Assembly: GCF_031769215.1 (NCBI RefSeq) | Contig: NW_026782687.1 | Span: 124,001-188,000 of the forward strand | Reading direction: 5' to 3' | Length of the DNA: 64,000 nt | Origin: Ylistrum balloti | Lineage: Eukaryota | Shown here: in pieces, positions 3,801-50,812 of the stretch | Layout: every line of letters starts with the position of its first letter | Numbering within the stretch: the stretch's first letter is position 1 | The notes under the pieces: generated by a model | The model's database searches: none | The model's input: the letters and a program-made list of their open reading frames with translations, nothing else | Told to the model about the DNA's origin: nothing | Made by a program: the position numbers and the translations under genes

Positions 3801-5347
3801 TTTATCTCATAATGGATTCTTTTCAACTTGTGTTTTCAGCTTTTAGATCGGTACAGATTAACATAATCAGATAAGGAAATAGAATATATTCATAAACATG
3901 TCTTCAGATGTTATAGAAATATATTGCAGTTGTCGTTTATATCATAATAGTATGAAACAAATAACATGCAAAAGGTTTTGTTTTAAACAATCACAGAGAA
4001 TCTCAAACAACAAATCCAGTGCTCTTCTCTGATTTAATGAACATCACGGTGCCTCAAACATTGACAGAACCTCGTGCGCTGTCAGTAGGATTCAAACCAA
4101 GGCCCATGAGTCCAGAGATATACCAACTGCATCATATAGTCCCATAGGCATGCTATCACATGTATTTCAATAGAAAACTCATTGTTACCTTTGTTGCCTT
4201 CTCATCTGACCGACAGGCTATTATGACTTTGGCTCCCATCATGGCGATCCATTTTGCCGTGTGATAACCGATACCTACAGGACATGAATAACTTAATTGA
4301 CATGTATATCCTATATACTGACAGATTTAAGAAAAAGTCACAATTATACCGTGAAAAGATAGCAAACTCGACGAAGGCAAAATATATCGTAGACCCTCAC
4401 AAACTATCAAGTTATCCATAATGATGAACACTTCCGGTATCACACATGACATCTACCATAAGATCCCGTTCATTATTTGGGGGAGAAATCACAGTATAGC
4501 AATCTGCAACGATTGTGTTTATAACTGTTGTTTTGTTGGTTGTTTGACAGCATTTAAACATCGAAGTCAAATTAAGACGATGTGAGGTTAGACATTACCG
4601 AAAAATGGGTTGATAGGCCTAACTTATCAATATTGCTTTCATAAATATCTCCTATGCATAAGACGACAGAATATCAGCCACACCTACCGGGGCCTGCATT
4701 AGAACCTCAAGAGGATTATGGTAGGAACTGAAAGCATCAATGATTGTACAATTGATATACGGGAAAAGCATCGTACCATAAACTTTGATACAATAGAGCC
4801 AAATTATGCTCTCATTTAGGAATGTGATATTACTTATTTGAATCAGCATCAGTAATTTATTTTAATGATTAAATATCTTTTGAAGATCGTATTTAAGAAA
4901 TTAATATTCCACCTGATATATTTTAATAAAATTTATCTATCTATCTATTTCATGATTAAACATCGTCAAACCTGTAATCTTGTATACAGACGTAAACACT
5001 GTGTGTATGTATACACACCTTGTAAACATCAATATAGCTTTTGTAGGACGATATCAGTTAAAGATAAGCCAAAAATAAAACGTGTCTGTACCTATCAGGA
5101 ATACATTAGAATGATGTTTTAACTACTACATGTCCAACGGAAGAAAATTGATTGATTTAATATCTATCCAAGAAAGGTATCACGTTAATGTACATATATA
5201 ACCTGTACATGTATAACCTCTCTCTTGAACAAGGAAGTAAGTGCCTTTCATTAACACATGTGAATACCTACCTTGATTTCCACCTGTGATTATCACCACT
5301 CTATCTCTCGGTAGAGAAACTCGCGGAAAGGAATGTTTACCTCCCAT
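877..5347 (-). CDS. SDR paralogue A (retinol dehydrogenase/WWOX-like), exons 1-5; exons 6-8 lie beyond the left edge
   Basis: Exons 5347-5272, 4274-4189, 3688-3481, 1931-1897 and 1077-877, all GT-AG with compatible phases. Translation: MGGKHSFPRVSLPRDRVVIITGGNQGIGYHTAKW...ACRS...CNAGIG...VNYLSHF...VSS...YNRSK. It shows the TGxxxGxG, NAG and YxxxK SDR motifs and no lesion in the visible part. Confidence 0.93.
2810..3270 (+). mobile_element. Possible second Tc1-like transposase remnant in intron 3 of SDR A
   Basis: The plus strand reads PGRPRL...RKRL*RNANIGPQYSRP and ...SDG.R, weakly resembling the Tc1 GRPR linker and DNA-binding region. There are many stops. Confidence 0.4.
4081..4143 (-). 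mobile_element. tRNA-derived SINE head or pseudo-tRNA
   Basis: The minus strand has an A-box-like TGATGCAGTTGG and a B-box-like GGTTTGAATCC (4088-4098) at tRNA-like spacing, with no clean cloverleaf. Confidence 0.45.
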
Positions 5348-6069
5348 TTTAAGAATTAGGTGAACGCTTTCCTGTCAATAAATGCGTCTTTAAACATTAC
5401 TAATGTTGTAGTATAGTTCAGTTTCAGTACATACACAAACGATGACCAGCCACGCGTGACCTGTATACATGTGTATCCTCAGTAGACCATGTTGTGTATG
5501 ATTGTCTTCCTTCCAATGACGTCATTAGTTGGTCATCATGATGCAGCCTGATGTGCCTATAACCCGGACATCACCTTATACAATATCTCCGTGTTGGGTC
5601 CAAACACAAAACACGGGGTATGTGCTCATGCTGTGTCGCCTTACCCGGATATACAAGTGTTTATTCACCGTGACTAGTTTACAATGTACGGTTTGTGGGA
5701 ACATGTGTGCGATGTGTATACACATGTGCTAGATCTATTGTTGATAATTTGGAGAGTAAATGGCGCGTTCATGTCATGATAAGGACTTTTCATATTTTAA
5801 ACTTGTGAATAATGGACAAAGTGTTTTAACGTTCAGTTCATTTCACTGCCTTCTCTGTTCTTAATTTTCTTCGTTATTTAATTTATCATTTGGTGCTACA
5901 GTATCCGATTGTAACTCGTACGGGAAGTTGCTGTGAATTGGTGTGTTTACATAAACAACGTTTTATTGCTAGCTCGTCTGGTTGTCTATCAAAACATTTC
6001 TTCAAACATTTTACTACCACTCTTTGTACTATCTAATCATATTTATAGTTTTCTTGTGATGTTGTTTAC

Positions 6070-6300
6070 TCAAGAGGAGTTGGATTATTTAAAATTTCCT
6101 ATTGTTATTTTTTTTTCAATTTTCGATTTATTTTAGGACTTGTTCCCAGTCTCCCAATTTTGCCGGCAACTGGCAGACAAACTCAGGGTTTCGAGAGATA
6201 CAGGTTGGGGAAGGTTTAGGAGAAGTTTTACTGTCGTCATAATAATCTCATCCAGAGATATTTCTGTCCGGTTTCTGATTTCCCTATTCCATAACTGTTA
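6070..6300 (+). mobile_element. Penelope-like RT C-terminal fragment
   Basis: Reads NFPIV...TQGFERYRL...KFYCRHNNLIQRY. It matches other copies in the window (10240, 46060, 63290). Confidence 0.6.
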
Positions 6301-13800: not shown

Positions 13801-15410
13801 GTTTGCTATTAACTCCACTTCTTGAGTAAACAGTATCACAATAAGAATGGTAGTACGTAGTTTTGACAAAGGATTGGTTGAACAGCTAGAGGAGACAGCA
13901 ATAAAACATTGTTTATATGGATTCTTGTGAAGTAAGGAATCTAATATACACCGAGGAGGTTCATTTATTTATCCTTGAAAGAAAATCTAACAGATTGTTA
14001 TACTGAAACATCAGTAGCCCATGTTTCTCCTTTGGATAAATTGCATAATGTACAGGTGGGGTTTCCTTCGTCATCAAGTAAGCCTAGCACTTTTTCTATA
14101 CAGGAGATGTAACAATGTCTGCAGGCAAGGATCTATGTATTTGACGCCTAATCTGCAGGCACAGTAACATACCTGTCATCACGGAAGCAACAGCAATGTA
14201 AACGAAATACGGCGATAGATCAACCTAATCTATTCTAACATCAAGTTAAGATTTGTATCAACGCGACATGACTCCTACTCTTTCGTTCACAAAGGTAATT
14301 ATAAAAGCTTATCTATGCCTTATATTCCTCTGCTTCAGTAATTACAGAGGTATGCTCTTTTCAGGGTTTGCACCAAGAGTTACAGATTCAGATACGATTC
14401 AAACTTCAATGTCAATTTCATAGAAAAAAAGTTTTACAAAAACTGCATTTAACTTAAGTTTCATTTTACACAATTCTGAAAGCTCGATAAAGACTGAAGT
14501 AAAAATACCAGCTTGGTGAACACCAAAATAAGATAAAGGCTAAAATAGGATACATTTTATCATGTGAAAATGTGAAAGATATGCGCAATGATATATTGAA
14601 TACTAATAAGATTAATGCTATCATATGCCAAAATTTGAAAGATAAACGCCATAATATGATGGACACTATAAAAAGACAAATTCTATTAGATAAATATTTT
14701 TATAAGACATAATTACGAAAAACTCTATAACAAGAAGAACGTCTTATTCGAGAGATAAGACAAATGTTAAAACAAGGCAAATGCTTTGATAAGACAAAGG
14801 CTATTATAAGACATAGGTTATGACGAGACAACATTAAAATAAGATGGACGCCAAAATAAACGGTAAAATGAAATTACTGTATTATGAGAAAAGTTAAGAT
14901 TAGTAAAGTAAGTAAGTGATTAGCTTTACAAAATGTTGAATAGATATGTCTAAATCAGTAAGTTTTAGACTTTGTCCAAATAACTTCCATTACATGCATA
15001 TTCTCTATCAGCATAAGCCATATTTTTAAAGTCTGTATCAAAATTATTTAAACATATGGACTATGCTTTTTACTGATGTAATGTGAAAAAGACTGCATTT
15101 GTGCCTTACAGTCTTAAATACATACTGTTGCATTGTGTCATATTTCAAACTTTTTTTTCTTCAAAATATCCATCGCTGTCGATAAATTTAATTTTGAATA
15201 TCTGAATGAAATGTAAATAGTTAAGTCTTTTCGATTGGTTGAAGTTCTTCACCAGTCTGGAAAAACACGTGCATGTCCTCGTGCATATCCTCCTGTTTGG
15301 ATTTACCCCAATATAGTTACACGCATATACATACCTGTGTTGGATCCTGTTATAATATGTACCCGGCTTGCAGGAATGGTTACCCGAGGAAACGAAATTT
15401 GTCCTCCCAT
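7821..15410 (-). CDS. SDR paralogue B, complete 8-exon gene, 341 aa
   Basis: Exons 15410-15335, 12677-12592, 11325-11115, 9992-9958, 9758-9558, 8991-8841, 8307-8181 and 7959-7821 (TAG). Total 1026 nt, in frame, GT-AG throughout. Motifs: MGGQIS, TGSNTGIG, ACRS, NAG, VSS, YGRSK, HPGVV. Confidence 0.93.
10240..11010 (+). mobile_element. Penelope-like retroelement 3' fragment (end of RT plus shared 3' tail) in intron 3 of SDR B
   Basis: Reads FLDSNIPTSP...SHLTRYSRA..SHYHDF...TDKLVTHG...FYGR across stops and frameshifts. It is followed by the blocks ATGAAGCTGGACGTGTTTGATGCT and GGATTATGATTAT, which recur elsewhere in the window. Confidence 0.7.
11440..11520. repeat. (GT)n/(GCGT)n compound microsatellite
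   Basis: Alternating purine-pyrimidine tract visible directly, about 115 nt from the exon 3 acceptor of SDR B. Confidence 0.9.
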
Positions 15411-15939: not shown

Positions 15940-16255
15940 AGGGCTTTTCACCCAAAGGTGAAAAGACCTATTGTTTTTGTTAAGTTTCTTATTCTTCTTT
16001 TTCTTCTTCCGTATTTTGTGGAGTCCCTATCTTCAGATGAGTGAAAGAAAGGTTGGTGGTTTTGTGAGTATTTTTTTAATGAAGGTCTGAAGGTGTTACA
16101 GGAACTTTTTCAAATAGGTCAAACATTTAATATGGCCGCCATGACGTCATAAACTAAAAACATTAAAACTGCTGTAACTTAAAAACCATTCATTGTGGAA
16201 AGTTTGAGCAATTATATTATTTGTAGAGAATTTCCTTATCTAATTTTTTTTTCTT
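15940..16255 (+). mobile_element. Probable non-autonomous Helentron/HINE-like fragment
   Basis: Starts with the hairpin CTTTTCACC-caaa-GGTGAAAAG followed by a CTT/TTC-rich tract, and interrupts a minisatellite. The family assignment is by architecture only. Confidence 0.4.
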
Positions 16256-16257
16256 TT

Positions 16258-16840
16258 TTTTTGTCCTGCACAGTTACTTTATACGGTCATATAATACAAT
16301 ATCTGCTTTGTCCTGGGCACCGTTACCTCATACGATCATACAATATTATAATTGCTTTGTCTCAGGTGTAGTTACTCTTAACGGTCAGACATTAGAATGT
16401 TTGTTTTTTTTCTCATGCGAAATTTCTTTATACGATTATACAATACAACATCTGCTTTGTCTTAGGTGTACCTACTTTAAACGGCCATACAATACAATAC
16501 ATGATTTGTCTCGGGCACAGTTACTTTATACGGTCAGACAATTACAGGTTTATATTGTCTTGGGCTCAGTTCCCTCGTTATAAAACCAGACAATACAATA
16601 TGCTTGCTTCGTCTCAGGTGCATTTACTTTACACAGTCAGATAATGCTTTATTTACTTTGTTCCAGTGGCTTTTTAAGTTAAGACACTGCTACATTTACT
16701 TTGTCTCGGGCGCTTTTACTTTTTCGGTCAGACAATACAATGATTATTATTGTTTTAGGTGCAGTTATTATTCACGGTCAGAAGACAAATAGTTGATATA
16801 TCTCAGTCACAGTTACTTTTCACAGTAAGACAATACACTA
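16258..16840. repeat. Degenerate ~49-bp minisatellite, about 12 units, with a further 1-2 units at ~15865-15935
   Basis: Recurring core ttgtctc.ggc.cagttacttt..acggtcagacaatacaa. Confidence 0.8.
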
Positions 16841-17670: not shown

Positions 17671-20600
17671 TTATTCTCCTTCCAAACATTTGTTAATTTC
17701 ATCTGGGAGAAAATTTGCTTCCTTCAGAAAGTCTTTAGTGTAAGCCCATAGAGATTCCTGTTTTCGTGAATTCCTAGTGAAAAGAAAACAAATTTCAGCA
17801 ATATTACATGGAGATCTTTAATCAAACTATCAAATGATGAGTGACATGATATGGTGTTTGCTGATGAAGATTGCTGTTATATTCCTGTAAGGTATGCCTT
17901 GTCATTCATTTTGTATTATATAAATAAAGACACTGTTATCTTCTTTCAGTAAGTAGGATGTCATGTCTACCATACATTTTCGTGCCGGTTTTATCTGATC
18001 TGACATTGAAAAACTCAATTTGAGTGACTCATTCGCTTAAACAGATTAATATATCAACTATCCTCTTAACCTAGTTTTTATCGACGGACGTACTTATTAG
18101 CATCTAGATAGGTTGGATACGGAGTACGACACAATATTATCAAATACAGCAGGACTGAATCCTAATATTTAGTTATTTATTTCATCAATGGATAAAAAAG
18201 ATAAACACGATAGAAAAGATGGAAAATAGGAAAATAAGTAAGACAGAGCAAAAATCCTTATTGTGAAACGATAGCCATCATACAACAATCATATTAACAA
18301 TAATACAACAGCTCTATATTTACTTTGTTATGAAATTTCGAACAAATTGTGCAATGCGTGTGCCTTTAATGAAGCTCTGGCATTGCTGTTAATATGAGAT
18401 AATGAAACTGAAATGATCAATGGTAAATATGACTTCTTTTTAGCCTCGAAATCAACCCCATTTTTCTGAAAATTTCATTTGTTTAACGATTTTAAAGTTT
18501 GTTAAATATAAAGTAATTCAATAGTCAACATTTATTGAGAATTTTTAGAAGACGATAATAACTGACTATTAATTACATGTCCTCTTTTCCAGACACATCT
18601 GCGTTATCATAATATCTAAAATAACATTTTCAAAAGAGCTGAAAATGATAACCATTGCGATTTTGTACATAATTTACAATTATCACTGTAATTTATTTTG
18701 CCACACAGCGTTTTATGTTTGGAAATAAATTATTTCTTACCTTTTTCACATTGTTTGTTTTGAGCAAGGTCGTTAAACATGCTTTAATTGTAGATTGCAG
18801 TAATTTGCGATCAAAGCATACGTAATTGTGCTAGGTAATGTAAAATATAATATTTGAATATGATTTACCCTGGTTAACCGCTGACGGTAGCAGGATTGAA
18901 GTCACCATAATACACATCATGAACACCTTTTAGGGACGGATTTACAGCAGCATTGATGCTGGATTCAGCTCCTTCAAACGGGGTCTTTAATTGTCCTTAT
19001 AAAAAGAAAGGATAAGAGATACCAAATGAGCAACGTAACGACCGGTGATATGTTCCACGGAAGTCCAAATTTCAAATAAGAATTTTTCAAAATATCAAAA
19101 TACAACTCGGAGGACAAAATGGTGTATTCAGAAAGTGTAATGGTTTCTAAATATCAAGGGTATGTATCTGTAACGAAAGATATTTTCTTTGTGAAAGTCG
19201 AATGAAAGGCCATTACAGTGTATGACACCATCATAATTGATAGAATAGTTATATACATGCTTGTAATGAATTGATTAAGAATGGAAAAGAAACCATGCAT
19301 TACATGTGATAACTTTAGGAAACAGTCAACTGTTAGTTCACACTCACCAACAAACTTCAATACACTAATACAAAAAAAATAACTTCATATCCTTTGAATT
19401 CCTTGTCACTTCAGTATCCACATAGCCCTGATGAATGCTTAAAAAGATGACATTTGAGTTTTGAAGTGGTCGGTTCATACTGAACATCTGCATTATCTGG
19501 AAGGAAACATCAATTTTGGGTATTCTGATCTTTAAGATATTTGCCTGTGAAATGTACACATTTGCAAAGTAAGTTGTCTTAGAACACTGGAAAGCTGGTA
19601 TCGTGTTTCGACCCAAATTGTTGTTGCTAATTTAACTTTTGCAATTGGTACTATACCTTTGAATACATGCTAGGCTCAAACTTGTATTTATTATTCAATT
19701 TTAAATATCCTTTTCCATGGATGGTCTTCAGTGTTCATAACATTAAATGATTAACAACAAACATCCCGAAAAAAACACTTAAAGTTCCAAAAATTATCTT
19801 CATATTTCTGCTGAACGGAACAATTGAAACTTGCTCCACAAATCAATAATTCAAATGCCAATGCCGATTGTTGATTACATTACTAGGTCTCTTCTAGCGA
19901 TATGCCCTTTAACTTTCAATATTAACTAAACACTGGCGGTAGTAACCTCCGACTCAAGACCGTCTCGATTATCTGATCAACCGCAAAATACCTCGTGCAG
20001 AACTATGACTTATTTGAATGGTGTCACTATGATATCTGTAAGCATTATCAGTAGGAAAAAGCGGGTGAAAGAGTAATTATAACACTTAAAATGACACACT
20101 GTGACCAAATTATGTAACATGCACACTTGTGATATGACAACCAATCCTCAAAGTATCAGGGCAGTTTCTTTTGATATAAAGGCAGTTAAATTCAAATATA
20201 ACCGTACATGATGCTGACAACTGATTTTACTTCGAATGAACGTTAGAGACAGAAAAAAAGACGTTCACGGAAGGAAAACCGCATCAAACATATCTAGATA
20301 AGTTTTATGTGAAATGCTTATCCATGTAATTGTAAAACATGTCGTTAGCTATGACTATTCAGTCTTACATGTACGACCTAAAGCATTACAAAACATGTTT
20401 ATAAGATTGATGAAAAATCAGAATTCCTCAAAAATGACGATAACACAATTGCTAACAGGCGATATTGTTTGAAGTGATGAATTTTTTATTGTAAGCACAA
20501 GTATAAATTGCATAACACGATACAACTGAAAAGATTTTGACAAAGTCAATGAAGCTCGCTTGACGATATAAATGTATGATTATCATTAATATAATCTAAA

Positions 20601-22246
20601 AATAAATATATATTCACCTGGAACATCAGCTCGTATCCCTCTGTTGTGTACTCTGTGGACGAAAAGACTAACAATACATCAATCTGCCCCTGAAATATCA
20701 GTTGTAATAAGTTTGATTAATATTAAACACCGTAAAAAATTCAAGTAAAATATTTATGGGTTTTCATGAAACGTGTGAAATAAGAGCATACATGAAAAAA
20801 TATATATTTATTCACTGTTCTCTTTTGTTTATGATTTTTTTTATACATCTGTAAGTAAATTTCAGTTGCAGAACTCTCTTGCCCTGTCTTCCGACCGACA
20901 GGCAAGTATCACTGTGGCTCCCATTATTGATATCCATTTGGCTGTTTCGTATCCAATACCTGTACACACCAATGTAATAATTCAAATTCAGAGGTCAAAT
21001 TCAGAGTGCACATGGATGTGTAACCTTAGTCTACAATTAACCGTCATTGCATAAACCACCAAAAGAAAAATAAGTCGATGTTTTGATGTAAAAAAGAGGC
21101 ATCAATCCAACATACATCATCTGAGCTTTAAATGAAAGACACTATACAGTGCAACCTTTAATAACCAATCCACTACACCCTTGGCTAACAAGTACACCGT
21201 ATGATGACCAAGCTTTGGGATACTTATGCTATTGTAATATATCTATGGTTAAGATAACATGATATCGATTCCTACGTCCCTTTCCTATATCTGTTGGAAA
21301 TGACATCCTTAATTCAAATAGAGAGTGTGATATTTACAATTGTTCAAAACACGGGGAAATATAGATATGAATTCTTGGAAAGCTTGGTAGTTGTGTGGGG
21401 TTACAGTTTACATAATAGTTTTGGGAATGAAATAACATCGCAGCGAAATGTAGACTCCTAAGATTAAAGATGAAATCAGCAGAGAAAACAATATATCATT
21501 GTATGGCTTCTTTTCCTACACGGAAAATTCAACGTTATCATTTCTAGTAAATGATGGCCTTGTTTCAAAATTACTGATAATGAAATGAAAAAAATACTTT
21601 ACAATAATGTATATTGTGAAAATAAAAAAAATGAATATATTGAATCGTGTCTCGATCATTCTGGAAACATTCCATTTGTTTTAATAACATTTGAGTTATG
21701 TCCCTTGTGTTGATTTGTGTCGTGTTAGGTCAGTATGTGGTGACCTACATTGAAATAAGACTCTGTTTGATCGATAAGGAACATTGCATGTTGTTTTGAC
21801 TGTGTGATGAATAGAGATCAATGAGAAACAAAAATCTGTTTAACGATTTGTTGATGGCGAAGAAACGTCTGGAACGCCACAGGACTCCTCCAATTGACAG
21901 GCGAAAATGCTAAAGTGTCACGACCAATCTGATGGCACGTTTACAATAAATAATACAAAAATATCTCGTTGTATAACATTGAAATAAAATCGAAAAGAAG
22001 GTACTACATATGAAATTGTTATGCATTTACATACGGGATGATAAATACAAGTATTCCAAAGTTCAAGACATTTAACTTTTTATCTAAAGACATTACCAAG
22101 GAAAGCAGTTGATTAATTGTATTGTCAATGAAAAGAATTAATTTCAATAAGGAAACATCAAGTACACTCACCTGTTTTGACACCAGTTACTATGACAACC
22201 CTCTCCTTTGGCAGGGTTATCCTGGGAAAAGACTGGTGGCCACCCA
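17671..22246 (-). pseudogene. SDR paralogue C pseudogene (D-like)
   Basis: Exon 1 (22246-22172) is 75 nt instead of 76, a frameshift with an early TAA. Exon 2 (20959-20874) lacks a GT donor at the expected position. Exon 3 is absent. Exon 4 is at 20652-20618. Exon 5 is not recognisable. Exon 6 (19496-19348) is 149 nt instead of 151, has HPG changed to HQG and a stop at 19365-19367. Exon 7 (18995-18869) has an in-frame TAA at 18874-18876. Exon 8 is at 17773-17671. Confidence 0.9.
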
Positions 22247-23119
22247 TAATTTCTCGTGCTATAAGATGGGCCTACAGGCTAGCTATTTACAAATCATTAT
22301 TTTAGTGAGTATAATGTCGGTTACGATGCGGTATCTGGAATTAATTAACTTTCTTGTCATTTGTCAATAAAGATATCGGCTTCTGGATAAATGTTAGGTT
22401 GTGTCCCCCCCCCCTACGTTTATTTCAATTCAACGTTGTTGTAGATTTAAGCGGAACAACTTCTGTAAATAGTTCAGTATATAGGACAGAAAAATGGATT
22501 GACCAAACTGCATTATTTCTGCTTTGTAAGCAGAACACAACAATACAGTTAGATCAGACCACTCTAAGACTAAAACTAACGAAATGCTATATATCATATT
22601 ATCTTAATGAAAACAAACTAGTGGACTGTAATCATATATAGCTACTACACTTGACTAACGATAACGTAGCTGAGAACGTTCTATATATTGTACTAATTCG
22701 TACCTTTTTGAAGGAACGCGTGCAAATTGCATGCGAACTTTGAGAACCTAGAGATATTTCACAGTGTCCTTTATCAAACTACTAGATAATTTCATTCTTA
22801 TCTAAAGTGACGGACGAACATATTATCATATATTTTTAGATATCAATTACTATATATAGCAAGTCAAATCGCTGAAATTTTAATTTCAACATGATTGATC
22901 ATATAACTAGTCTGTTTGAGTATATCTTATCCATAATATATTTTTTTATTTCATCCACACATGATATGACCTAGTGGTGGTATTATTTGCTGAATGCTTA
23001 ATTGATTTCATGATATAAGCTCTTGAAAGATGGATCGTCAAAAAATAACATTTGTTCAGCATGTATGGCAGGTTGATGGGAACAGGATAAGAAAAAATGA
23101 TAGCAGTTGATAATGTTTT

Positions 23120-30750: not shown

Positions 30751-33017
30751 AATCGACTGCACTAGTGTATTACCACACGTGACTGGTAATCTACATTGTG
30801 ACCTCGGGTACCTGCTATCGTAATTGTACCCCATATATACACAGTAGTAGATTATAGTAAATGTTTGGTTAGTCGTCTTATTGTGATTTCGTACACTTCG
30901 TAAGTAAACTTAAGAATCAACAGCTTTGCTCTATTTTAAGTAAACATCTGACCACTGATTACTGAAATAAACATCAAAACAGTAAATAGTTTCTATTTTG
31001 TTAAATGAACTTGTCAGAATAGGAAAAAAATGTTCGAGATCCGTGGTTATGCAAAAATAGGCAAACGGAATCATTCTTTCGCATTTGATAGAATGACTGA
31101 AATCGCGATGAAAGGGAAGATGTAAACACGCATATATAACCAGACACTAAATATAGTGATAACAATTAGACTCAATGATGCTGTGAGAAACACTATATAA
31201 TTTTATCTATTTTTGTATATATAATAGTAATCAGTCATAGGTATAAATACCTAACAGAACAAGGTAAGGAGTGTAAAATCAATCGATCTGTATTGAAAAA
31301 ATATTATTAACTGCAGCAAATATTTATTGATTATAACCTCCTTGATTTTCAGTCCCCAATATTTACCTAACCATGCATGCCATGTTTTATTCAATTGAAA
31401 AGAGACATGATTCAGAATATTTACATGCACTAGACGTCCTCATGAAATGATCAGTATATGGAAATCACGAAATCTATGGAATTATAGGGCTAGTGCCCCA
31501 ATCTAAATTTTGACATTTTCCACAGTCGCGTCCTAGGTTTCAAAATTTAATCTCATCGTCACTGAAGTGTGCAAGGGCAAACAGCTTTATAATGCAAATT
31601 GATTCACTATTTGGTTCTGCTGTATCTAATTCTAATTCTGTGTGTATTTTGTGCATTTTGTATCTTTGAGGACCTGAAATTACCTGAAGTAGATTATAAT
31701 TTTCTTTGAGAAGGTCACTGATCGATGAAGCAGAAGACACATACCTTTCCGGAAAGCTGAAACTTTAGTCCAAAATTAGACTATAACCGGTTTCGGTTTC
31801 GTGGCTCAAGTTTTTATTAATTATTTTTTCGTTCATTTTACACCCTCTTTTCATTTTTCCGAGATAGAAAGACGGTTTTTATGTCATTATGATCGTATTG
31901 TTATCTGATCGGACATGATTTAAATGTTATTTTCAATTGAGCATATAGCACATTAACCAAATACCTGTAACTTCCTTTCAGAATTTTACTGCATATGTCT
32001 TACTGGATAGGTAAACAGTTAATGCCTTATTTTGTACCATGATATACTACAAATTAACATCTTATAGATACACAATAGATAAAACATAGATAAAACGTCC
32101 ATAAAAATCCTTTTGTTGTTTGAATGTTATAGCTTGAACATTTGTCTGAGGTTTTTACAGTGTCAGCTGTGAAGTAGAAAAGTATGGACAATCCATCCTG
32201 TCAACTAGCAGTCAACCTTTCACTATTTCCACAGTTCATTGCATTGTGAAAGAATTTTTTTATAATAATGGTACTTTGATAAAAAATCAGCATATGAAAC
32301 ATTTCACCAATCATCTTAGTATTTGAACACAGTATTTCGATAAACATCGTTTGAGATCTCGACCGTTTCTATTATTTTACTGGATAAATAATAGCATGAT
32401 TCAATCGCTGGCTTTGCTAGAATAACCCTTGTATTATTCGGACATGAAGGCATTTCCAGCATGGTCAGTTCGTTAGACTCTACTTTCAATAGATGAATCA
32501 TATTTATATGACATCTTGTCTGTATTTTAGGTCATTGATAATTAAATGACCGCCAAGTTACGAAGTTATGATTAAAAAAAAAAAAAAAAAGGTCATGAAA
32601 CGATGTCCGGCTTAGCCAGAATGTTTATATAATGTCATTAACTTGTGCATGGACAAGTCTTGATAATTTTGACAATAACTACGGAAGTAAGTTTTGTTGA
32701 ATTATTATGTAGTTACACAGTAGTCTCCCCTTCTACCAGAATAATCCACCCATAAATTAATACTAAAAAAAAAAATAGTGTGAAGTATTATTTTTTTCTG
32801 CATGATTGCGTACAAAAGATCAACACACCACGTTTACAAGGTTTCCAGCTCACTTGCATGGACTAACACTGAAGTATATTCATTGGTGTCATTCACACCA
32901 GTATTTGTTGCGATTCCACTGTGTACACTTGATAAACCAATTCGCGAAGTACCTTCCTTGCTCCTATAGATGATATCATCCCGTTAATACAATAATATAT
33001 AGTCCAGTAGCAACTCT

Positions 33018-36000
33018 TCATTTCCCGTCCAAACACTTGATGATATCAGGAAGAGAACCTCCTTCCTTAAGACAATTCTGAGTGTATGTCCATAACGTTT
33101 CCTGGTTCTGCTTATTTGTAAGTAAAATAAAACATAGTTTCAACAAGGTAAAGTATTAACAGTATCACAAACAATAATTACATATACTGTTCACTCGATA
33201 TATACTATTTTAATCTGGCACATGGTCATAGTATCCGATGTTAAAGAGAACACAGATCTTCGTTAAAAGTGGGGCACTAGAATTGAAATTTTGATGCATG
33301 CCACCTTATTTGACATTTGGCCTGATTGAGTTCAGATAAATATCCTACTTTTCATAGGTCTAACGATTAATAAAAAGTACAAGCAAATACAAATGTGATA
33401 TTTTGAAGAGCGATTGTCAGATATCATTACTCATTTATTGCTATATTTTCGATTGGTGATTTTAAACATTTTCATTGAATTTTTCATCCCTGTTACATAA
33501 GGAATTTCTTTCTGAAGCTTCGAAAATTGTATACAGTAACTAAAGATATAGTGTACGTTACCTTACTATGGCTTAGTGTACAGTACCATTAGTATAACAT
33601 GGTTCGCATATCTGAATATATAAAAACATTCATCTTCGTATTTTGATAATTTTACCTAGTTCTACTGTCTGGGGTGTTGGGTTTACAGTCACTATAATAC
33701 ACATCACGGACGTCTTGAAGTGCCGGGTTCACGGCGGCATTGATCGTGGTCTCAGCTCCTTCATATGGAGTTTTTGACGGGCCTATAAAAAAAAAATGAA
33801 ATTAATCAGAAACAAATGTGGTAATTTGTAATGTTTTGCCTTACCGTTCACATTTCTACAATTACATCTTGTTGATTTGAAGTAAACAAAATTCGCGTCA
33901 ATAACATTCACCTTCATTTAAAAATTGAAATATTATTAGAATGATGTAATTGATTTTGACTGAAGTGGTAAAATCCATATAAGATGCTAACAACCGAAGG
34001 TTTTTTTTTAAAAATAAAAATACATTAGTGTCAATTACACGAATAAAAAAGTTTCTCTTATCTGTGATTGTATATAGGTATATTTAGTCAATGATGTTTT
34101 CCATTACAGTAGAACGAGACTGTTTTTGCTTTATGTACAAATTATGAATTACAAATACTAAGTTCCATTGTCATGAAAACTGAGGAAAACCATTTTATTT
34201 TGTATGTAAAGCTTGTAAATCATCAAAATGAAATTTTAAATTGAATCCACGGAACATCTCTCTAGAGTCATTTTAAAACACACAGTTTATCAATTCATAC
34301 TCTCCAATGAATTTCCCTAAACCGAACAGCAACGCCTAAGGTCCCATATCACTGAAGTTTCTTGTTATTTCTGTCTGCACAACACCCGGATGTAAATTAG
34401 ATACTGTGACGTTTGAATTTTGAAGTCGTCGGTTTATACTAAACATCTTCATGACCTTCAAAAACAAAGCAAAATATTTTTGATCATTTTTTTTGCCTTA
34501 CAAATGATAATTTGAATTATTTTATAATTTTCATGCTTTGTTTTGTCTTTGTTTTTAATTAAACAATAGTTACATTAAAAATAACAGTATGTAGTTATCA
34601 TAACACCTAAATAAAAGGACAGCCAACGTGATCATTGTCAATTATTTCTATAAACAATATTCCATAAGATACCTGGAATGCTTTCGAATTTCCTTAGAAG
34701 AATGTTCGTCGAAAATTACGTTCATTATACTGTCTTCTTCATTGCTCTAATTCATGCAAAAATATTTTAAATAAATACACTGCACGTGATAAACGTATTG
34801 TTTATAGATGCATTAAGACAAAAAACGGTGCTCAAGTGTGACTTAATTAGTAATTAGGGCACTTAATTACTGTGACCTACTTTTCAACAATGGCATATTT
34901 TTTGGACATTTTTTCTAATGAAGGTTTTGAAATATATCATCAAATGACATTTAAGAGAAAAAAACTAAAAAAAAAATATTTTAGTTTGATAATTATAGCA
35001 ATAATTATGAATTTGCCCCCCCACTCGTCCCCCCTATTTGAGCTGAGACTAATGTCATGTCATTACCGTCTGACCTTAAGTTTTTAATAGATAAAAAAAT
35101 AAAAAATATTCGTCATGGCCACCAGAAGGCCCAAACTGGCACTCCTCCTTTATTTGTAACACTTAAATTTTATATCAAATAGATTGGTTAACGAATCATT
35201 CTTATGACGTTTTAACACAAACAAGATATTAGTAAATATAAGTTATAATATTCTGTAGTTACAGTCTTAAAAATACTCAAAGCATATCATCTTAACTAAG
35301 TAGGGTTGAAAAGATTCCACTTCTAAAAACACTTTCAGTAAGTCTTCCCCACTAACATTGTAATTTCATTTTATTTGTAGACAGTTGACCAATATATACT
35401 TTGCAATGAATAAGGATAAATGAGAAAATAGTATCAAGGCTTACCTCCCTTGCCTTCTCTTCCAACCGACAGCCCGATATGACTGTGGCTCCCAACATGA
35501 CTATCCATTTGGCTGTTTCGTATCCTGTTTGATTTGATTTTAGTTTTATTTAACAAATTACTGATGAATGTTCAACCGATACGTAGATAGATATCAGATC
35601 TAAAATGTTGATTTTATTCGATATAACATTTAATCAATCAATGTAAATTTTTCCCCGTTTTACCGATGAATTGCAAAATATTGCAATGACTTTCGGAAAT
35701 CACGGATTAAGTGGAAACTTATATGAGATTTTGTTATCAAATGATTGATTATTCAGATAAATATTGTAAAAACAAACCCAACAAGCAAAAAACAACACAT
35801 TTCTACGTCATACTTAAAGGCTTTTTGCTCTATATCTATCATTTCCGTTGTAAAGTCACTGTGTGACGTCAATGTACAAATGTACTTGTAAACCTGACGT
35901 CACAGTAGGGTTCACGCATTATACAGTAACATCCGTAAATTGATGACTGATGATGTAGAAGAACTATATTAATATCTATAGGATTTATACATGGCATGTA

Positions 36001-36797
36001 GGCAAAGAATTTACACTTAAAATGCAGTCAGAAATATATGAATAGATAAGCAGAGGATATTTGGTTGTTAATAACATGAACCTCTTCTTCTTGAGACCAA
36101 CTACTTATGCTTTTCCCCTCATAGGCTACTTGCACGTTATAGATGTTTCAAAATACACTAAGATATATGATGTATGAGAAAAATAGTTCTGATGTTGATT
36201 TTGGAACAGATTTTGTTATACGTGTATGTTGGTTTGCAGTTCTCAATGGTTGCAGTCATTATAACAATATTCAAATACAAAATAAGTAGAAGTGCGAAAA
36301 CGTTGTAAGGAGCCTATGGTACATTCAGGTTTGTATCATACAGGAAGTAAAATCTACCAAAGGGTTTATACACAACAATTAACGATAGATATTGTATACA
36401 AATACGTCATACAAAAACCAAGAAAATATCAACATAACAACATAATCATAATCCAAACTCAAAGTCAATAAAACTACTTCAAACTATGCACAAAAGAAAG
36501 ATTTGCATGGAGATTCCTGTAAAACGTACCCAGAGAACAAAACCAGGTGTTGCGGAAGAGTGAGCGTCTTCATCGACGACAAATGTCATGAAAATCTTAT
36601 CCATCTTCATGTCTTCATTTTTAATGGCCATGTTGACATGCAGATATCGAAATCTCTTGATACTTTACTTCAATCGCTGCTTATAGAAGTGTATCTTATA
36701 TTATGTGTGTCTTGGACCTACCTGTGTTAGCAACGGTAACGATGACAATTTATTCCTTTGTCATGGTAACCCTGGGGAAAGACAGGTGAGAACCCAT
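33018..36797 (-). pseudogene. SDR paralogue E pseudogene (D-like)
   Basis: Exon 1 (36797-36722) has TAA at 36750-36752 and TG changed to TV in the Rossmann motif. Exon 2 (~35524-35445) has lost its first bases. Exons 3, 4 and the 5' half of exon 5 are not found. The exon 5 remnant (~34765-34672) has Y changed to TAA. Exon 6 (34455-34305) has TAG at 34336-34338 and a GA donor. Exon 7 (33782-33656) is intact. Exon 8 (33117-33018) has an AC acceptor instead of AG. Confidence 0.92.
36410..36640 (-). mobile_element. 3' tail of the same Penelope-like family, in intron 1 of pseudogene E
   Basis: Shares CAACATAATCATAATCCAAACTCAAA and AAACCAGGTGTT.CGGAAGAGT.A.CGTCTTC with 23160-23300. Confidence 0.7.
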
Positions 36798-38564: not shown

Positions 38565-38640
38565 GTTATGCTTCTTTGTCTGCGGTGATGGACATTGAAT
38601 ATCACGTTGGGGACCTGGGTTCGATTTCTGTCGGGGCTCT
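38565..38640 (+). mobile_element. tRNA(Asp)-like SINE head or pseudo-tRNA
   Basis: TATCACGTTGGGGACCTGGGTTCGATTTCTGTCGGGG resembles the 3' half of eukaryotic tRNA-Asp. B-box GGTTCGATT lies at 38618-38626. The acceptor stem is not intact. Confidence 0.55.
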
Positions 38641-40559: not shown

Positions 40560-43500
40560 TCAGTGATGGGATGAAGATGATTTTGTGTTCGTCTTTTTCA
40601 CCGTCCGGAGCGCCTCCTGGATGAAATCTTCAGGTAGTAGATCTCTTAGGTTGTCAATTGTGCATTGAAGGAGATAGTCCTGCAGCTCTCTGTCTCTGTA
40701 AATAAACCAGAAAGTCAAATTTAATTTCATAAAAAGACACCAAGTCGAAAAAACACGTATTCAGTATGAATATCCGATAAAATGGAGAGAGAAAAAAGTA
40801 TACAGAAATCAATTTCACCGACACTATTTGAGAATATGTTCATTATCAGACATACGTAATTGTACAATGTACAATACTATAAAGCATTAATGTATTCGTT
40901 TTATGTTTCTGATATGGTGAAATCTTAATCCTAGAACTTGGTTGTTTACTACTGCGTGCTTATAAGCCTGTATAACACCGCGAACTTTCGTTCAACTTTA
41001 AAGCATTATCATTCAAGAGTCTGAAAAATCAGCGGGGTTCTTTCTTTTAAAGTGCATTTAAATAGATTAAAAAAAGATTGGGTGTCAGGTTCCTGTTTAA
41101 TCAGAATTACATGAACGAATATCATAAGGCAGTGTTGGGTTTAGTTAGAGTTTGTTACAACTATAAGGAGATAACACACGCACCTGGCGGTCTGACTAGG
41201 AAACTCAGCGGCGTCTCGAGAGTGCGTGAAGTAAGCCCGACTCAAGCCCTTTAGTTCGGGACTTACAGCCGCATATATGGTCGTAGCCGACCCTTTTCTG
41301 GGAGTCTTTATCATACCTACAAAGAAATTATTTTAATGAAAGTAAATGGAACCCTTATCATCTGATTATTCTAATTTGCATTCTAATACAAATCTGTACA
41401 GAAGGCAATAAAAAAAAATTCCAATGGAAGGGAGATCACTCTTAAACACTTAGCTACTCAGTAAAGTTTGTTACTAAAAGGAATTAGTTATGGAATTAAT
41501 AATCAGCAATGACGAATAGTTGTAACTTAAAGAATGAACTCTATAACTTTGTTTGGATTTCATTACTAGTTCATTTGTTTGTTAAAAGACGAAAATAATT
41601 CATCTTTTGTTTTGTTGGGGGTGGTCTTTTTTTCTTACTATCAGGTCACTTGTAGTACATTTTATGTAAAAATAAAAAAATATTAACTTGATACTTACAT
41701 AAACATTTCAAACAACACCTGAAGCAGTTGAACTTTTTTCCGAAGTGTCGATTTCGTCGGTAGAGATCCTTGGTAACGTATCCCGGATGAACACTATATA
41801 ACTCTACGTGTGTTTTCTCCAACATCCGGTCTATGCTGTACATCTGCATTATCTGTAAATCACACACAAGCTTTTTAAAGCATTGAACGATATTGCTGTA
41901 CATATATGTATGATCTTTTTTTGAGAAAAAATATATTTCCGTTATATTGAACAGCAAGTAAGATCAGACCATTTCGTTTCCATTATCTCAATAATACTGA
42001 CGTCACATATTTTTTGCATAATGTTTGATATCTTTGATCATTTTTTTCTGCTCAATTTAAAAAGTGGCATAGCCATGCAAATGTAAATTTATGTGAGCAA
42101 ATGACGCGGAGATCTAAAGCACTACATGGTGAATATGTCAATTTTAATACAGAGATTGATCCTGCATCATAGCGCCACTGCCATCAAACCTATGAGGAAA
42201 TATAGTTGATAAAATTCGTATATATAAACTTGTATCTTGCCGTCTACTAATGACTACACATAATCATTAAGTGCTTATTTAGGTTTTATTTCAACATGCA
42301 TTTTTCACATTTATTGTCACAAAAAACTAATGAAGAATTATAGACTCAAATATATGTATAAATTCTTACCAAATTAAGTAGCAAAGTATGAATAAGAAAC
42401 CATTGATGGTAATTGTATAATAAATGTTTTGGAGTAACTTGTATTTGTTAACACGTCATACCGAAGATAAATTAAAGTGATGTATTTATGTTACAAGGAC
42501 GGCACATTAAGTCAGAAGTTCAAAGAATGTAATATACTTACCTGATAAAGCTTTGTGTTGCTGTAACATTGGAGAGGATCATGCTTCGCCATCCGCACAC
42601 CCGCTGCGTAGTTAGCATCATAGTGACAATGTTTGTGCGCCGCACTTGATACCAAAACGATTCTTACGTCATTTCCAGATTTTTTCATAATCGGCAGGAA
42701 ATGTGCCATTATAAGAAACTGACTGAGGTAATTGACCTTTAATAATGAGAAAAAGCGGATAATGAAATAAATGCACTTTAAGTTCATTGTGAAAATTTCA
42801 ATCTTTTACATTTATGAAACAAGATCTATTCGATATAAGCTAAGGTAGAAAGTCCTATTAGGGTAACTCCAGTCATGCTTATTTTTAAACTTCAATCTAA
42901 ATGTAACAAACATGATTTATGGTTTTAGTCATGTAAAGAACGAAACCGATGGGGTTCACTGCAGTCTCTCGAAGGAAAGGAAAAACAATCAAGATTCATT
43001 TTAATAATATGTATAAAATTCAAATAAGGTTATAATTTGGAATTAATAATGTGTCTGGAGTCGAGTTTTCTCCTATATTCGTTGTTCGAGTCATTAAAAA
43101 GACAATTAACACTAGTCACATGAACACAGTAACATGAAAGAATGTCCTACTGATCAATACTTTACCAGTGTCATCATATCACCTCACAGTCATGTATAAT
43201 CAATACTTATATCGATACTGAATTACGTGTCAGCGATAACTAGAGCGTAAGGTTTTTATAACCTTAGCCTTTTTTATTATGATTAAATAATTTATTATGG
43301 TCTGAGTATAATTAATAAAGCTGCTGTAGAAAGTCTTACCTGATATGTCAGCTCATAATTATCATCTGTCACAACTGAAAACAAAAATAGAAAAAAAAAA
43401 TGAATAGATGGTAGAACATAGTATAAGTACATATGATACATGTTTGCGAATGTCAATAGCGTCTAAACCTGACCGATCACAAATATACCTTTTTATGGAT

Positions 43501-46500: not shown

Positions 46501-49500
46501 AAACAAACTGTAAATATATACACAATACACACTAACTTAATATTAAGAAGGTCATTTATCTATGAAACATATTTGAAATACAATATTCTCATTTTTGTCT
46601 CCCACATATACCGCAAATAAAGTTACGTCGACCGTTAGTTATTGATTGAAAACATTAAACATTGACAAATCTAAAAAGGCATTCTAGAGTTTATGAAGAA
46701 CTGGATCATTCATCATCGTGTATCCGCTCAATGAGTTCAGTATATCAAAACACATTCAAAACAATATGGTAAACGCATGTTGATAGAATTAGCTTGTTTC
46801 CCGAAATCGATACTGCTATTTTAATGGTTTTATGTTGAACCGCACGTTTAACTAGCAATCGATCGCTTTCGTATACCAGTGGTCTAGTAAATTGTGATAG
46901 CAGCCAGAATATTAATTTGTAAATGGTTGTAATGCATATGTAATGTTTGTCGTTATTAGTGATATGTTTTTTGAATTGGATATGAAAAGTTATATTACGA
47001 ATCTGATATGATAGAGTTAGGAGTGATATCGACATTATGGTTTCAGTAGAAAAAAATTCCATACCGGATATAAAGTATACCAAAACGGCATCGTACAAGG
47101 ATAAGAATGAGCAAAGGACAATAGGATGATATATATACTCTAAAGTGTATAAAGGCATCAAAATACACATATGGACAAATTATAGCTTAAAATACAAGTA
47201 CATCACAGCATAATCTACTCCACCCAAAGGCTTCCTCGCTAAAATACAAGTACATCACAGCATCAACTACTCTACCCAAAGGACTTCTCACTAAAATACA
47301 AGTACATCACAGCATCAACTACTCTACCCAAAGGACTTCTCACTAAAATACAAGTACATCACAGCATCAACTACCCAGCCTAAAGGAATTCCTCACTAAA
47401 ATACAAGTACATCACAGCATTAACTACTCTACCAAAAGGACTTCTCATTAAAATACAAGTACATCACAGCATCAATTACTCTACCCAAAGGACTTCCTCA
47501 CTAAAATACAAGTACATCACAGCATCAACTACTCTACCCAAAGGACTTCTCACTAAAATTCAAGTTCATCTCAGCATCAACTACCCAGCCCAAAGGACTT
47601 CCTCACTAAAATACAAGTATATCACAGCATCAACTACCTAGCCCAAAGGCTTCCTCACTAAAATCCTAGTATATCACAGCATCAATTACTCTACCCAAAG
47701 GACTTCCTCACTAAAATACAAGTATATCACAGCATCAACTACTCTACCCAAAGGACTTCCTCACTAAAATACAAGTACATTACAGAATTCATCAATAAAG
47801 AAAGACATAGCCTAATTCATGGATGTCTCATTTTTACTTCAAACGTTTGTTAAACCGCGCACAGATTTGATCTGAGGACCATCTTTACAGTATGTTGCTC
47901 ATGAGATACGCTTAAAAATGGTAGAAAAACAAAAAATCGTCTCGTTAGTACATATAGTAAGGGGACGATCGTTAACATTTTGTTCGTACGAAGTGTGCTC
48001 TAGTCAACACATTGACACTGGTCCATTTAAATGTTTGACTTAACAATATACACCGAGGTATACCGTATTGTTTACTTGTGTTTCCTTGTAATGCAGAGAC
48101 CACTGAACAGTCGTTATTAGGGGTCATTTATTTTTAGCTCTTCATTGTTCATTGGTAACACGGTGCTCATGTATGATTATCTTAAACCTGGATTTGTCCG
48201 TTACGGATCACTGACTAATAATATGGAAATAAGGCATTTGGAATCACACTATTATGAGCTTATACTCATAACAGTGTAATTCCATTCATTTTTCCAAAAG
48301 AAACTTGTTTTGGTTTGATTTCAACCTATTATTTCTTCTATCTTTAGAGATATGAAAATTGATAAGAAGACAATTTGTTGTCGTCATACAAACATTTTTT
48401 ATTTGCTCTTTGAAATATTCTTAAAAGAAAATGTAAATATCTTGTTAAGTGGAATATGCGTTGGACACTTTGGTTTCTATTTAAAACAATTTGCATACTG
48501 AACAACGGTCTTATAAAGTATTGTTAGCTTGAATTATTGTTCGAATATAGTCTGATATAAGAGAAAGAAAGTATTGACATCGCTTTGAAAGTTGATGCCT
48601 TTGCTTTAAATAAGCGTGCTTTAGAAGAATTGTAAATTAATTTTAATCTGCAAATCATATATATGTACAAGTGATATATAATTTTGATAATGTACAGATG
48701 TACTAGTAATGATACTGATATGTATAATCAAGAGTAATATGTCACTTAAACACGCGAAAATCTACTGGAGTCAAGTAATGCCATTAACGGTATAGTCTAT
48801 GGATTAAGTTCGCATCTTATTCATTCTCCTTTTAAATGAAACTTAGCTATGACACATGGGCATCAATTCGGCTCCTACACATACTCACAGCCAACGAAAT
48901 CGACCAGTTTAATATTACTAAACATAGGTCTATGTAAGTGTAGGCAAAACAGTACTAATGACATATCATATAAAAACCGAAATGAATGGAATATCTATTC
49001 AGTATCGCAAATCACAATAAAAATATCCCATTCCACATTCCTTTTGTATTCTGAATTGAACAATGTATAATACAGTAAATGTGTATGAAACCTCAAATAA
49101 TGGGTGAAAGGATAAGCAATTTCTTTTAGAAGAAGAATGAAATGTATTTTTGAATCAAAATGCAAAACAATTAGTTGTCAAATTTGGGAAGGATATTTTT
49201 CATCAAAACCAAGTTGTTGTTTTTTTTCCTTCTTTTTTTTCTTTTTAAATTTTACTCATAAATCTTGTTTTTGACGAAAAATGACAACTTTAATGCAAAT
49301 TTATCATGAAATCAAATTGGATATTACAATACAAAAGTGGTGTTTGGATGTTCAGAATATTTCATCCTATTTCATAGTATACTTAACATGTATATAACGG
49401 ATCGATTTAAAACTTTCAATTCCTCTTTCTTTGTCGTTCGCTAAGGCCAATCTGTATTCTTCTATTGTTTAGTCATTATTTGTTGTCTTTTCACCTAATA

Positions 49501-50812
49501 TCACTAGATAATTTACGGAGGATATACGAAAGATCGGTATATAAAATTCTATCAATCATTCGAATTGCTATCAAATTGTCTGTTAATCAAGCAATCAGTT
49601 ACAGTAAAAAAACTAACAAGGATGAATTGAATATTTTTTTCCCTAATATTTCTTTTTAAAGTTCAGGTATATTACATTTGTATTGACGGAAGTATCAAAA
49701 GAGTCCTTCAGACATTACAGAAGTATTCTGCCGTATTTCTGAGCAATTTGAGTACCGGCTCTTGCTTTGAGAATATGCTATTATCTCGCTTTGACTTTGG
49801 TTCATATGACGGTTGATGCGTGATATTGTTTTCCTCTTGCTTATACTGATATTTACAAGTAAAGCTTATTTACTGCATTTAAATTATAACTTTGTTTTTC
49901 AATTTCAGCGAAGTAAATAGATATTAATCAATTAAGATTTAGCTTTCAAAATAGTAATTGATATTTATATTATAGTAATACTATCTGTGTGCTGATTCGT
50001 GCCATTTAGAATAAAAAAATGTTGTTAAATATGTATCGTTATTATACCTTATATTTAAGATGCATGTCTTATTAATTTCGTAATGTCATATACGTCACTT
50101 AAATAAACCATTTGAGTGGAAGAAATGTGATAACACTTGTCAAAATTGAAGAGGGCACATATTGTTCCTCAGATATAGGGAGTAGTGTACACCGTTCATT
50201 GTTATCAGGAACGCTAAGAACATGAACTCTATAGTATAACGGGTTCTTTTATATTAAAGAAATGTCCCAAGTATGTTACTATGATTATTAACATGACCTA
50301 CATATTCATTAGTTTATATGGCATGGCATACTTATACAGAAACATTTATTTCCTTACTATAGCAAAAAACAAATGAAAAGAAACAATTTATGTATACAGA
50401 CCATGCGGGTTAGGTCTGCTACAACACCTTAAGTTGAAGCACGTACTTAGGTATTGAAATATTTACGGGTAGGTGGGTTCTACCAATTAAAAAATCACAA
50501 GCTTGACTAGACGTGTCAAGAAGGTGGTAAACTGGTATCTCAGTTCTAACGTTACATATTCTTCCCTTCAACTTTAAAAAAGAGAAATATCTATAGAACG
50601 TTTAATGACAGTATTAGACATCTCTAACTGTAAATACTGCTTTCATGTAAAACCGATTAAAGTCATTGGTGTAGTGTTATGTATAAGTCTGTGGTCGGAT
50701 ATAACAGTATATACATTAGCAGGTAAACAGACTCACCTGTGTCACCCCCTGTCACGATCACCACAAAGTCCCTGGGGAGGACCACTAATGGGATACTGGC
50801 CCGGGCCCCCAT
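40560..50812 (-). CDS. SDR paralogue F, complete 8-exon gene, 340 aa, the most divergent copy
   Basis: Exons 50812-50737, 45938-45853, 44484-44277, 43374-43340, 42736-42542, 41852-41699, 41316-41184 and 40695-40560 (TGA). Total 1023 nt, in frame, GT-AG throughout. Motifs: MGARAS, TGGDTGIG, ACRS, NAG, VSS, YSNTK, HPGYV. Confidence 0.92.
46060..46400 (+). mobile_element. 3' fragment of the Penelope-like family, in intron 1 of SDR F
   Basis: Contains GAGAGATGCAGG...TTTTACGGGCAT, ATGAAGCTCGACGTGTTTGACGCTCGTTAG and GGCGGATGTCG...GCTTAC..TTCCG.CACACCTGG, shared with the other copies. Confidence 0.7.
47189..47785. repeat. 52-53-bp minisatellite, about 11 copies, in intron 1 of SDR F
   Basis: Unit AAAATACAAGTACATCACAGCATCAACTACTCTACCCAAAGGACTT(C)CTCACT, head-to-tail with no spacers. 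Confidence 0.95.

Follow-up and report, generated by a model that had tools for sequence, protein, structure and literature searches.

A 64,000-bp window of the genome of the scallop Ylistrum balloti (contig NW_026782687.1, positions 124,001 to 188,000, analyzed as G000:C830:124001-188000) contains six paralogous genes for short-chain dehydrogenase/reductase (SDR) proteins, designated A to F, each of which begins with MGxxxS, the predicted recognition core for N-myristoyltransferase (NMT). Comparison of sequences indicates that this start is deeply conserved and characterizes a distinct clade of metazoan SDRs. Its probable function is co-translational myristoylation, by which an SDR dependent on NADP(H) would be anchored on the cytosolic side of a membrane. 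Coordinates refer to the window unless a contig is given.

A six-frame scan of the window found MGxxxS at exactly six minus-strand SDR first exons, each leading into beta strand 1 and the Gly-rich motif (Table 1). Three other matches were unrelated short open reading frames (ORFs). All six starts match the PROSITE pattern PS00008 (G-{EDRKHPFYW}-x(2)-[STAGCN]-{P}) anchored at Gly2, which was used alongside per-position counts. A preliminary description of this DNA claimed that Gly2 and Ser6 are invariant while positions 3 to 5 vary, and this holds in all six copies despite synonymous codon changes: Gly2 is encoded by GGA, GGT, or GGG and Ser6 by TCC, TCG, TCT, or AGT, which includes both Ser codon families, while residues 3 to 5 differ between copies. 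The same description had restored one base to obtain the start of C, a correction that proved unnecessary because ATG GGT GGC CAC CAG TCT reads MGGHQS without a frameshift. We agree with it that the likeness of MGARAS, the start of F, to HIV Gag is a coincidence.

Relatives were gathered with a phmmer search of 1.84 billion representatives (query, exon 3 of gene D), two word-index searches, and one profile search. Nearly all full-length relatives returned by phmmer start with MG. Conservation was counted by position in 82 nonredundant relatives that were less than 80% identical and had TG at residue 21. Gly2 is present in 80 of them, position 3 is restricted to G (47), S (18), A (9), T, N, and C, positions 4 and 5 are unconstrained, and Ser or Thr occupies position 6 in 80. 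Phe7 (64/82) and Pro8 (79/82) are frequent, and V10, L/I12, and P13 are likewise strongly conserved. Within a wider clade defined by score, PS00008 matched at Gly2 in 106 of 126 nonredundant members versus 2 of 40 outgroup SDRs, and most of the nonmatching members are truncated or over-extended gene models. The clade consensus is M-G-[GSA]-x-x-S-[FY]-P, with the TGxxxGIG cofactor motif 20 residues in. The retention of Gly2 and Ser6 across synonymous codons, including the switch between TCN and AGT, and their conservation in at least seven phyla place the motif beyond chance.

The members come from Porifera (Corticium, Oscarella, and Dysidea), Placozoa (Trichoplax), Cnidaria (the coral Montipora), Echinodermata (four classes), Hemichordata, Annelida (Owenia), and Mollusca, the last with many species. 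No chordate, arthropod, or nematode member occurs among the named hits, which is suggestive only of an absence of the clade from chordates and ecdysozoans. The nearest proteins outside the clade are anchored insect SDRs and proteins of a rotifer, protists, and bacteria. Some sea-star, brittle-star, and sea-cucumber members (P0078, P0112, P0108, P0147, P0355, P0356, and P0366) have long C-terminal extensions, for total lengths of 421 to 722 amino acids.

The proteins behind this start have the features of classical SDRs. In 16 diverse members, T21, G22, G26, G28, R47, N115-A116-G117, N137, S166, Y195, and K199 are invariant. Genes A, B, D, and F have TG(A/G/S)N(T/Q)GIG at residue 21 (TGGDTGIG in F) and YxxxK at 193-196. 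The NAG motif and catalytic Asn-Ser-Tyr-Lys set of classical SDRs are thus present; C and E lack the exons that encode them. Database relatives carry Pfam PF00106 (adh_short) and PF13561, and their precomputed Pfam assignments are to SDR families only. Single-exon Pfam scans gave subthreshold adh_short matches, and the NCBIfam matches were confined to generic prokaryotic SDR subfamilies and all fell short of the cutoff (for PRK06197, E values of 1e-44 to 1e-47). A search of the ESM Atlas returned generic retinol dehydrogenase (RDH) clusters and no structure. AlphaFold2 (AF2), applied to gene D with the 16-member alignment, gave a mean predicted local distance difference test (pLDDT) score of 90.9, and the top Foldseek matches to the model were all SDRs.

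The preliminary description placed the first Rossmann strand about 15 residues after the start with no hydrophobic segment in between, and the models bear this out. TG falls at residue 21 in every copy, and AF2 places beta-1 at residues 17 to 21. Residues 1 to 16 are modeled as coil, with pLDDT below 50 for residues 1 to 3 and moderate confidence for residues 4 to 16. Mean pLDDT is 65 over the first ten residues and 96 over the next ten. On this model the N terminus is predicted to be exposed and disordered over 16 residues. No transmembrane segment was found with Kyte-Doolittle averages over 19-residue windows: the maximum is 1.1 to 1.5, versus 2.4 to 2.9 in membrane-anchored relatives. Gly2 fixed, a small residue at position 3, positions 4 and 5 free, and Ser6 fixed, all at the initiator Met of an exposed peptide, argue for the proteins being NMT substrates. 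The genome contains a gene for the enzyme itself, with PF02799 (NMT_C) above its cutoff across three exons (G000:C85:1253922-1254948).

The expected cofactor is NADP(H). The Arg of the ACRS motif (R47), noted in the preliminary description together with the lack of an acidic residue at the end of beta-2, is invariant, lies just after that strand, and aligns with the ACR motif of NADPH-dependent light-dependent protochlorophyllide oxidoreductase (LPOR). This Arg points to NADP(H) as the cofactor.

In the mechanism considered most likely, methionine aminopeptidase would remove Met1, and NMT would then acylate Gly2 during translation, its pockets accommodating Ser6 and the small residue 3. The myristate and a second, weak signal would attach a Rossmann enzyme of the soluble type to a membrane or lipid droplet, on the cytosolic face, where it would catalyze NADP(H)-dependent reduction or oxidation of a lipophilic carbonyl or alcohol. 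Candidates for the second signal are Phe7; the basic residues at 9, 14, and 16; the lid at about residues 231 to 260, which is hydrophobic and modeled with low confidence; and, in F-type proteins, a Cys-rich lid that may be palmitoylated. Lids similar to the Cys-rich stretch of F (Table 1) are found in the F-clade relative P0063, in mussel-clade relatives of F, and in members from chitons and oysters, and it is plausible that the stretch is a palmitoylation cluster acting as a second membrane signal beside the predicted myristate. The lipid-anchored, NADP(H)-using enzyme proposed in the preliminary description thus stands at the level of sequence, with the conserved MGxxxS, the missing transmembrane segment, the exposed N terminus, the NMT gene, and the invariant Arg all in agreement with it.

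Several observations weigh against a myristoyl anchor. A single myristate confers only weak membrane binding, and PS00008 is a pattern of low specificity. Phe7 and Pro8 are nearly invariant even though NMT does not need them. Sea-star members have Glu or Asp at position 6. A pectinid paralogue pair, P0197 of Pecten maximus and P0184 of Argopecten irradians, has lost Gly2 (MECKQS and MASQHS) while keeping SFPxVSLP and a seemingly intact enzyme. For gene D alone, an in-frame ATG (30832-30834, minus strand) lies 28 codons 5' of the start with no stop between. Finally, the sole public run for this DNA (X1) consists of genomic contigs of another individual. Over positions 26800 to 32700, X1 covers introns evenly and has no splice joints, and therefore it is uninformative on transcript starts. 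The P0197/P0184 pair, which is sister to the gene A group, is a clear case of loss; it amounts to a set of natural Gly2 mutants and offers a possible comparison.

The main rival explanation accepts the Met as the true start but holds that Gly2 and Ser6 are kept as a structural cap or interface, or for organelle targeting, N-acetylation, or a Gly-degron, with no myristate attached. The conservation of Phe7, Pro8, V10, L/I12, and P13 goes past what NMT requires, the moderate AF2 confidence of residues 4 to 16 means that some of the peptide may be packed against the domain, and the pair without Gly2 nevertheless retains SFPxV. However, the constraint is arranged as NMT predicts (Gly2, a small residue 3, free positions 4 and 5, and Ser6), and a structural role leaves unexplained why Gly directly follows the initiator Met from sponges to molluscs. 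We regard this alternative as unlikely, although it deserves to be taken seriously. Under the preferred explanation, myristoylation, Pro8 is no obstacle: NMT tolerates it, as exemplified by c-Src (MGSNKSKP). Because Phe7, Pro8, and LP(K/R)(D/E)R are conserved beyond the needs of NMT, the peptide may hold another or an additional role, and the extra conserved residues may aid membrane insertion or cap the domain.

Myristoylation also requires that Gly2 be N-terminal. The alternative, that upstream coding exons splice on and the ATGs are internal, draws on the occurrence, in all copies, of AG dinucleotides in the stretch from the upstream stop to the ATG, on the 54 open codons without a stop upstream of D and the ATG within them, on two transcript-derived ORFs of other species that run 10 and 25 residues further upstream, and on the genomic nature of the only public run. 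However, an in-frame stop precedes the ATG by 10 codons in A, 5 in B, 9 in C, 6 in F, and 24 in E. When the 5' regions of C, D, and E are aligned, exon 1 is highly similar and similarity collapses directly 5' of the shared ATG. The upstream ATG of D is not conserved in C and E, where it aligns to a gap. In addition, independent gene models and transcript-derived ORFs in at least seven phyla have this Met as their first residue and TG at residue 21; one of these ORFs, from a sponge transcriptome, is flagged as complete. The preliminary description had taken the ATGs as starts, and the RefSeq proteins for A, D, and F do begin at the same Met. Internal ATGs therefore seem very improbable. The upstream ATG of D, which overlaps a TATATA stretch, likewise reads MG (MGYNYD).

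A maximum-likelihood tree was built from 79 rows, each trimmed of all residues before the TG motif, with protist, bacterial, rotifer, and insect relatives as outgroups. It was the second of two trees, and Holothuria_2 and OUT_TM_274 were excluded from it on account of their very long branches in the earlier one. Without the N-terminal peptide, the 70 ingroup rows still form one group (Shimodaira-Hasegawa-like approximate likelihood ratio test, 98; branch, 0.55) with sponges basal; the full motif is found in 63 of these rows, MG without the rest in 4, and neither in 3. Genes A, B, D, and F each pair one to one with orthologues from Mizuhopecten, Pecten, or Argopecten. Both trees place B as the sister of P0190, and a Mytilus protein belongs to the wider F group. 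The array is therefore old rather than the product of a recent burst. That MGxxxS was merely inherited among recent duplicates, without function, gains something from the six copies being paralogues of one array, hence not independent observations, and from the mutual closeness of C, D, and E, but it can be dismissed as negligible because A, B, D, and F fall in different old subclades with orthologues in other scallops, the F subclade holds a mussel member, Gly2 and Ser6 persist through synonymous changes and the TCN/AGT switch while positions 3 to 5 change, and the motif is conserved across phyla back to sponges.

The array consists of six copies of an eight-exon gene arranged head to tail on the minus strand, as determined by self-comparison of stop-to-stop segments and by tblastn with the exons of D (Table 1). 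The window contains no runs of N. A, B, D, and F are intact, A exiting the window, and C and E are pseudogenes. Of the claim that the whole array consists of SDRs with an MGxxxS start, what stands is that all six minus-strand starts have the motif; two of the six genes are dead. Spliced models were assembled in-script, and database queries were exons of D (exon 3 or five exons) or the model-identical proteins P0169, P0176, and P0339.

Table 1. Genes and sequence elements of the SDR array in the 64,000-bp window
Feature	Position	Strand	Description
MGxxxS codons 1-6, A	5330-5347	-	MGGKHS; predicted NMT recognition core; PS00008 match
MGxxxS codons 1-6, B	15393-15410	-	MGGQIS; predicted NMT recognition core; PS00008 match
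MGxxxS codons 1-6, C	22230-22247	-	MGGHQS; predicted NMT recognition core; PS00008 match
MGxxxS codons 1-6, D	30733-30750	-	MGGHLS; predicted NMT recognition core; PS00008 match
MGxxxS codons 1-6, E	36780-36797	-	MGSHLS; predicted NMT recognition core; PS00008 match
MGxxxS codons 1-6, F	50795-50812	-	MGARAS; predicted NMT recognition core; PS00008 match
Gene A, first five exons	877..5347	-	Exons 5347-5272, 4274-4189, 3688-3481, 1931-1897, 1077-about 877; later exons beyond window start; starts MGGKHS
Gene B, intact, 8 exons, 341 aa	7821..15410	-	Exons 15410-15335, 12677-12592, 11325-11115, 9992-9958, 9758-9558, 8991-8841, 8307-8181, 7959-7821; starts MGGQIS
Pseudogene C	17674..22247	-	Exons 1, 2, mini-exon, 5, 6, and last exon present; exons 3 and 4 absent; starts MGGHQS
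Gene D, intact, 8 exons, 328 aa	25827..30750	-	Exons 30750-30675, 29112-29027, 28886-28679, 28451-28417, 28219-28019, 27647-27497, 27041-26915, 25929-25827; starts MGGHLS
Pseudogene E	33021..36797	-	TAA at codon 16 of exon 1 (36752-36750); stops in exon 4 fragment and exon 5; exon 3 and mini-exon absent; starts MGSHLS
Gene F, intact, 8 exons, 340 aa	40560..50812	-	Exons 50812-50737, 45938-45853, 44484-44277, 43374-43340, 42736-42542, 41852-41699, 41316-41184, 40695-40560; starts MGARAS
Cys-rich lid stretch of F	41699-41729 + 41315-41316	-	NCFRCCLKCLC (5 Cys in 11 residues); candidate S-palmitoylation cluster

The gene models agree with database proteins. The model of A matches RefSeq P0176 (DHRSX-like, Ylistrum balloti, 330 amino acids, same contig) across all residues encoded in the window. 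The spliced model of B is free of stops, and 315 of its 341 residues are identical in the Mizuhopecten orthologue P0190. The spliced model of D is identical to RefSeq P0169 of Ylistrum balloti ("retinol dehydrogenase 12-like") at all 328 residues. The model of F equals RefSeq P0339 (DHRSX-like, Ylistrum balloti, 340 amino acids, same contig), given an exon 5 donor at 41699. Dense single-base differences separate X1 from the window throughout D and its introns, and in intron 1 X1 carries a deletion of 47 bp (30029-30077); among the differences listed, none lies in exon 1 of D, and 33 others lie beyond those listed.

Exons 3 and 4 of C, which would carry the NAG motif and the catalytic Ser, Tyr, and Lys, were not found by tblastn with D exons and homologues or by windowed scans. 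C is a pseudogene because these exons are missing and, given the exon phases, the frame is lost without exon 3; for the same reasons a short isoform was ruled out. E is a pseudogene because TAA stands at codon 16, exons 4 and 5 contain stops as well, and exon 3 is missing. An intact near paralogue of E, P0170 (starting MGSHLSFPRV), lies on a different contig. Further clusters of the family are found elsewhere in the scallop genome, on contigs C34, C1081, C1212, and C645. With at least 11 annotated clade members in Ylistrum balloti spread over several contigs, the subfamily is an expanded one, as had been proposed. An intronless 317-amino-acid open frame at G000:C242:1634432-1635205 (plus strand), with 35% identity to residues 14 to 296 of D, may represent a distantly related SDR, a retrocopy, or contamination.

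Other features of the window are repeats and one open frame. The long first intron of F contains a 52-bp tandem repeat array (47188-47785, 11.4 copies, 90% matches), and two further tandem arrays lie upstream of the SDR array, at 59059-59304 (31-bp unit, 8 copies) and 60564-61067 (33-bp unit, 15.4 copies, 91% matches). A 49/149-bp tandem repeat at 16255-16542, between B and C, and related segments near 20779-21051 and 23156-23335 (plus strand) are probably a dispersed repeat. A Ser/Glu/Asn-rich open frame of 326 codons at 55818-56798 (minus strand), without a Pfam match, may be an exon of an unannotated neighboring gene or may have arisen by chance. No ORF across 51 to 64 kb could be assigned to a family.

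The genes of this clade have been named automatically in RefSeq, and inconsistently: as RDH11-, RDH12-, and RDH14-like, WWOX-like, DHRSX-like, polyprenol dehydrogenase-like, and TIC32. The mixture of names suggests that the RDH, WWOX, DHRSX, and TIC32 families all lie at roughly the same distance from the clade. With vertebrate RDH11, RDH12, and RDH14 the scallop proteins share the classical SDR fold, TGxxxGIG, ACR after beta-2, NAG, N-S-Y-K, a length of about 320 to 340 amino acids, and presumed lipophilic carbonyl or alcohol substrates. However, RDH11 and RDH12 have an N-terminal hydrophobic anchor, whereas the scallop proteins have 16 nonhydrophobic residues before beta-1 and start with MGxxxS. 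One-to-one orthology with vertebrate RDHs is unlikely because no vertebrate sequence occurs among the named hits. WWOX has two N-terminal WW domains and the scallop proteins (328 to 341 amino acids) have none; the region before the Rossmann fold, at only 16 residues, leaves no room for them. WWOX presumably has motifs like GIG[YF]ETAK and LHVL(I/V)CNAG, which we take as a lead and not as a test. DHRSX, or polyprenol dehydrogenase, shares the SDR core motifs. Human DHRSX presumably has FP..P.R before beta-1, resembling SFPxVxLPxxR. DHRSX has an N-terminal hydrophobic signal or anchor; the present clade has the myristoylation consensus instead.

The nearest solved structures in the PDB are LPOR and the Mycobacterium SDR 3rd5 (phmmer E values of 1e-17 to 8e-18; Foldseek E value of 2e-22 with template modeling scores of 0.78 to 0.80). 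LPOR binds NADPH, and its ACR(D) aligns with ACRS here, as does the AVR motif of 3rd5. However, identity to either is only 23 to 24%, they come from other organisms and have another substrate, and their N termini are not myristoylated. Parallels for the start are found on unrelated folds. NADH-cytochrome b5 reductase (MGAQLS) and c-Src are N-myristoylated. FSP1/AIFM2 has been reported to reach lipid droplets through N-myristoylation. These flavoproteins and the kinase resemble the SDRs described here in having Gly2, a small residue 3, and Ser6 on a fold that is otherwise soluble.

Full-text literature searches found no papers tying myristoylation to SDR, RDH, WWOX, or DHRSX. A paper on chicken NADB-LER genes was dismissed as a precedent because it refers to internal PROSITE sites only. 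What is new is thus not the genes, which RefSeq already holds under automatic names, but an SDR clade with a conserved, predicted N-myristoyl anchor. We lean, by a modest degree, toward a fuller picture in which this is a pan-metazoan clade, apparently missing from chordates and ecdysozoans, that is myristoylated instead of carrying a transmembrane helix or WW domains, some members, including F, adding a probably palmitoylated Cys-rich lid.

Membrane attachment of lipid-metabolizing SDRs is usually ascribed to hydrophobic helices at the N or C terminus. If the anchor proposed here is real, the clade would be the first lipid-anchored class of SDR and would add a different and potentially reversible mode of SDR localization. 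That the common model animals do not have it may be why it escaped notice, and its absence from chordates and ecdysozoans, if confirmed, would account for the lack of study. MG[GSA]xxS[FY]P with TG at residue 21 would provide a compact signature for separating the clade from proteins named RDH, WWOX, or DHRSX, and the clade would offer a testable enzyme family for the lipid, retinoid, or polyprenol metabolism of marine invertebrates.

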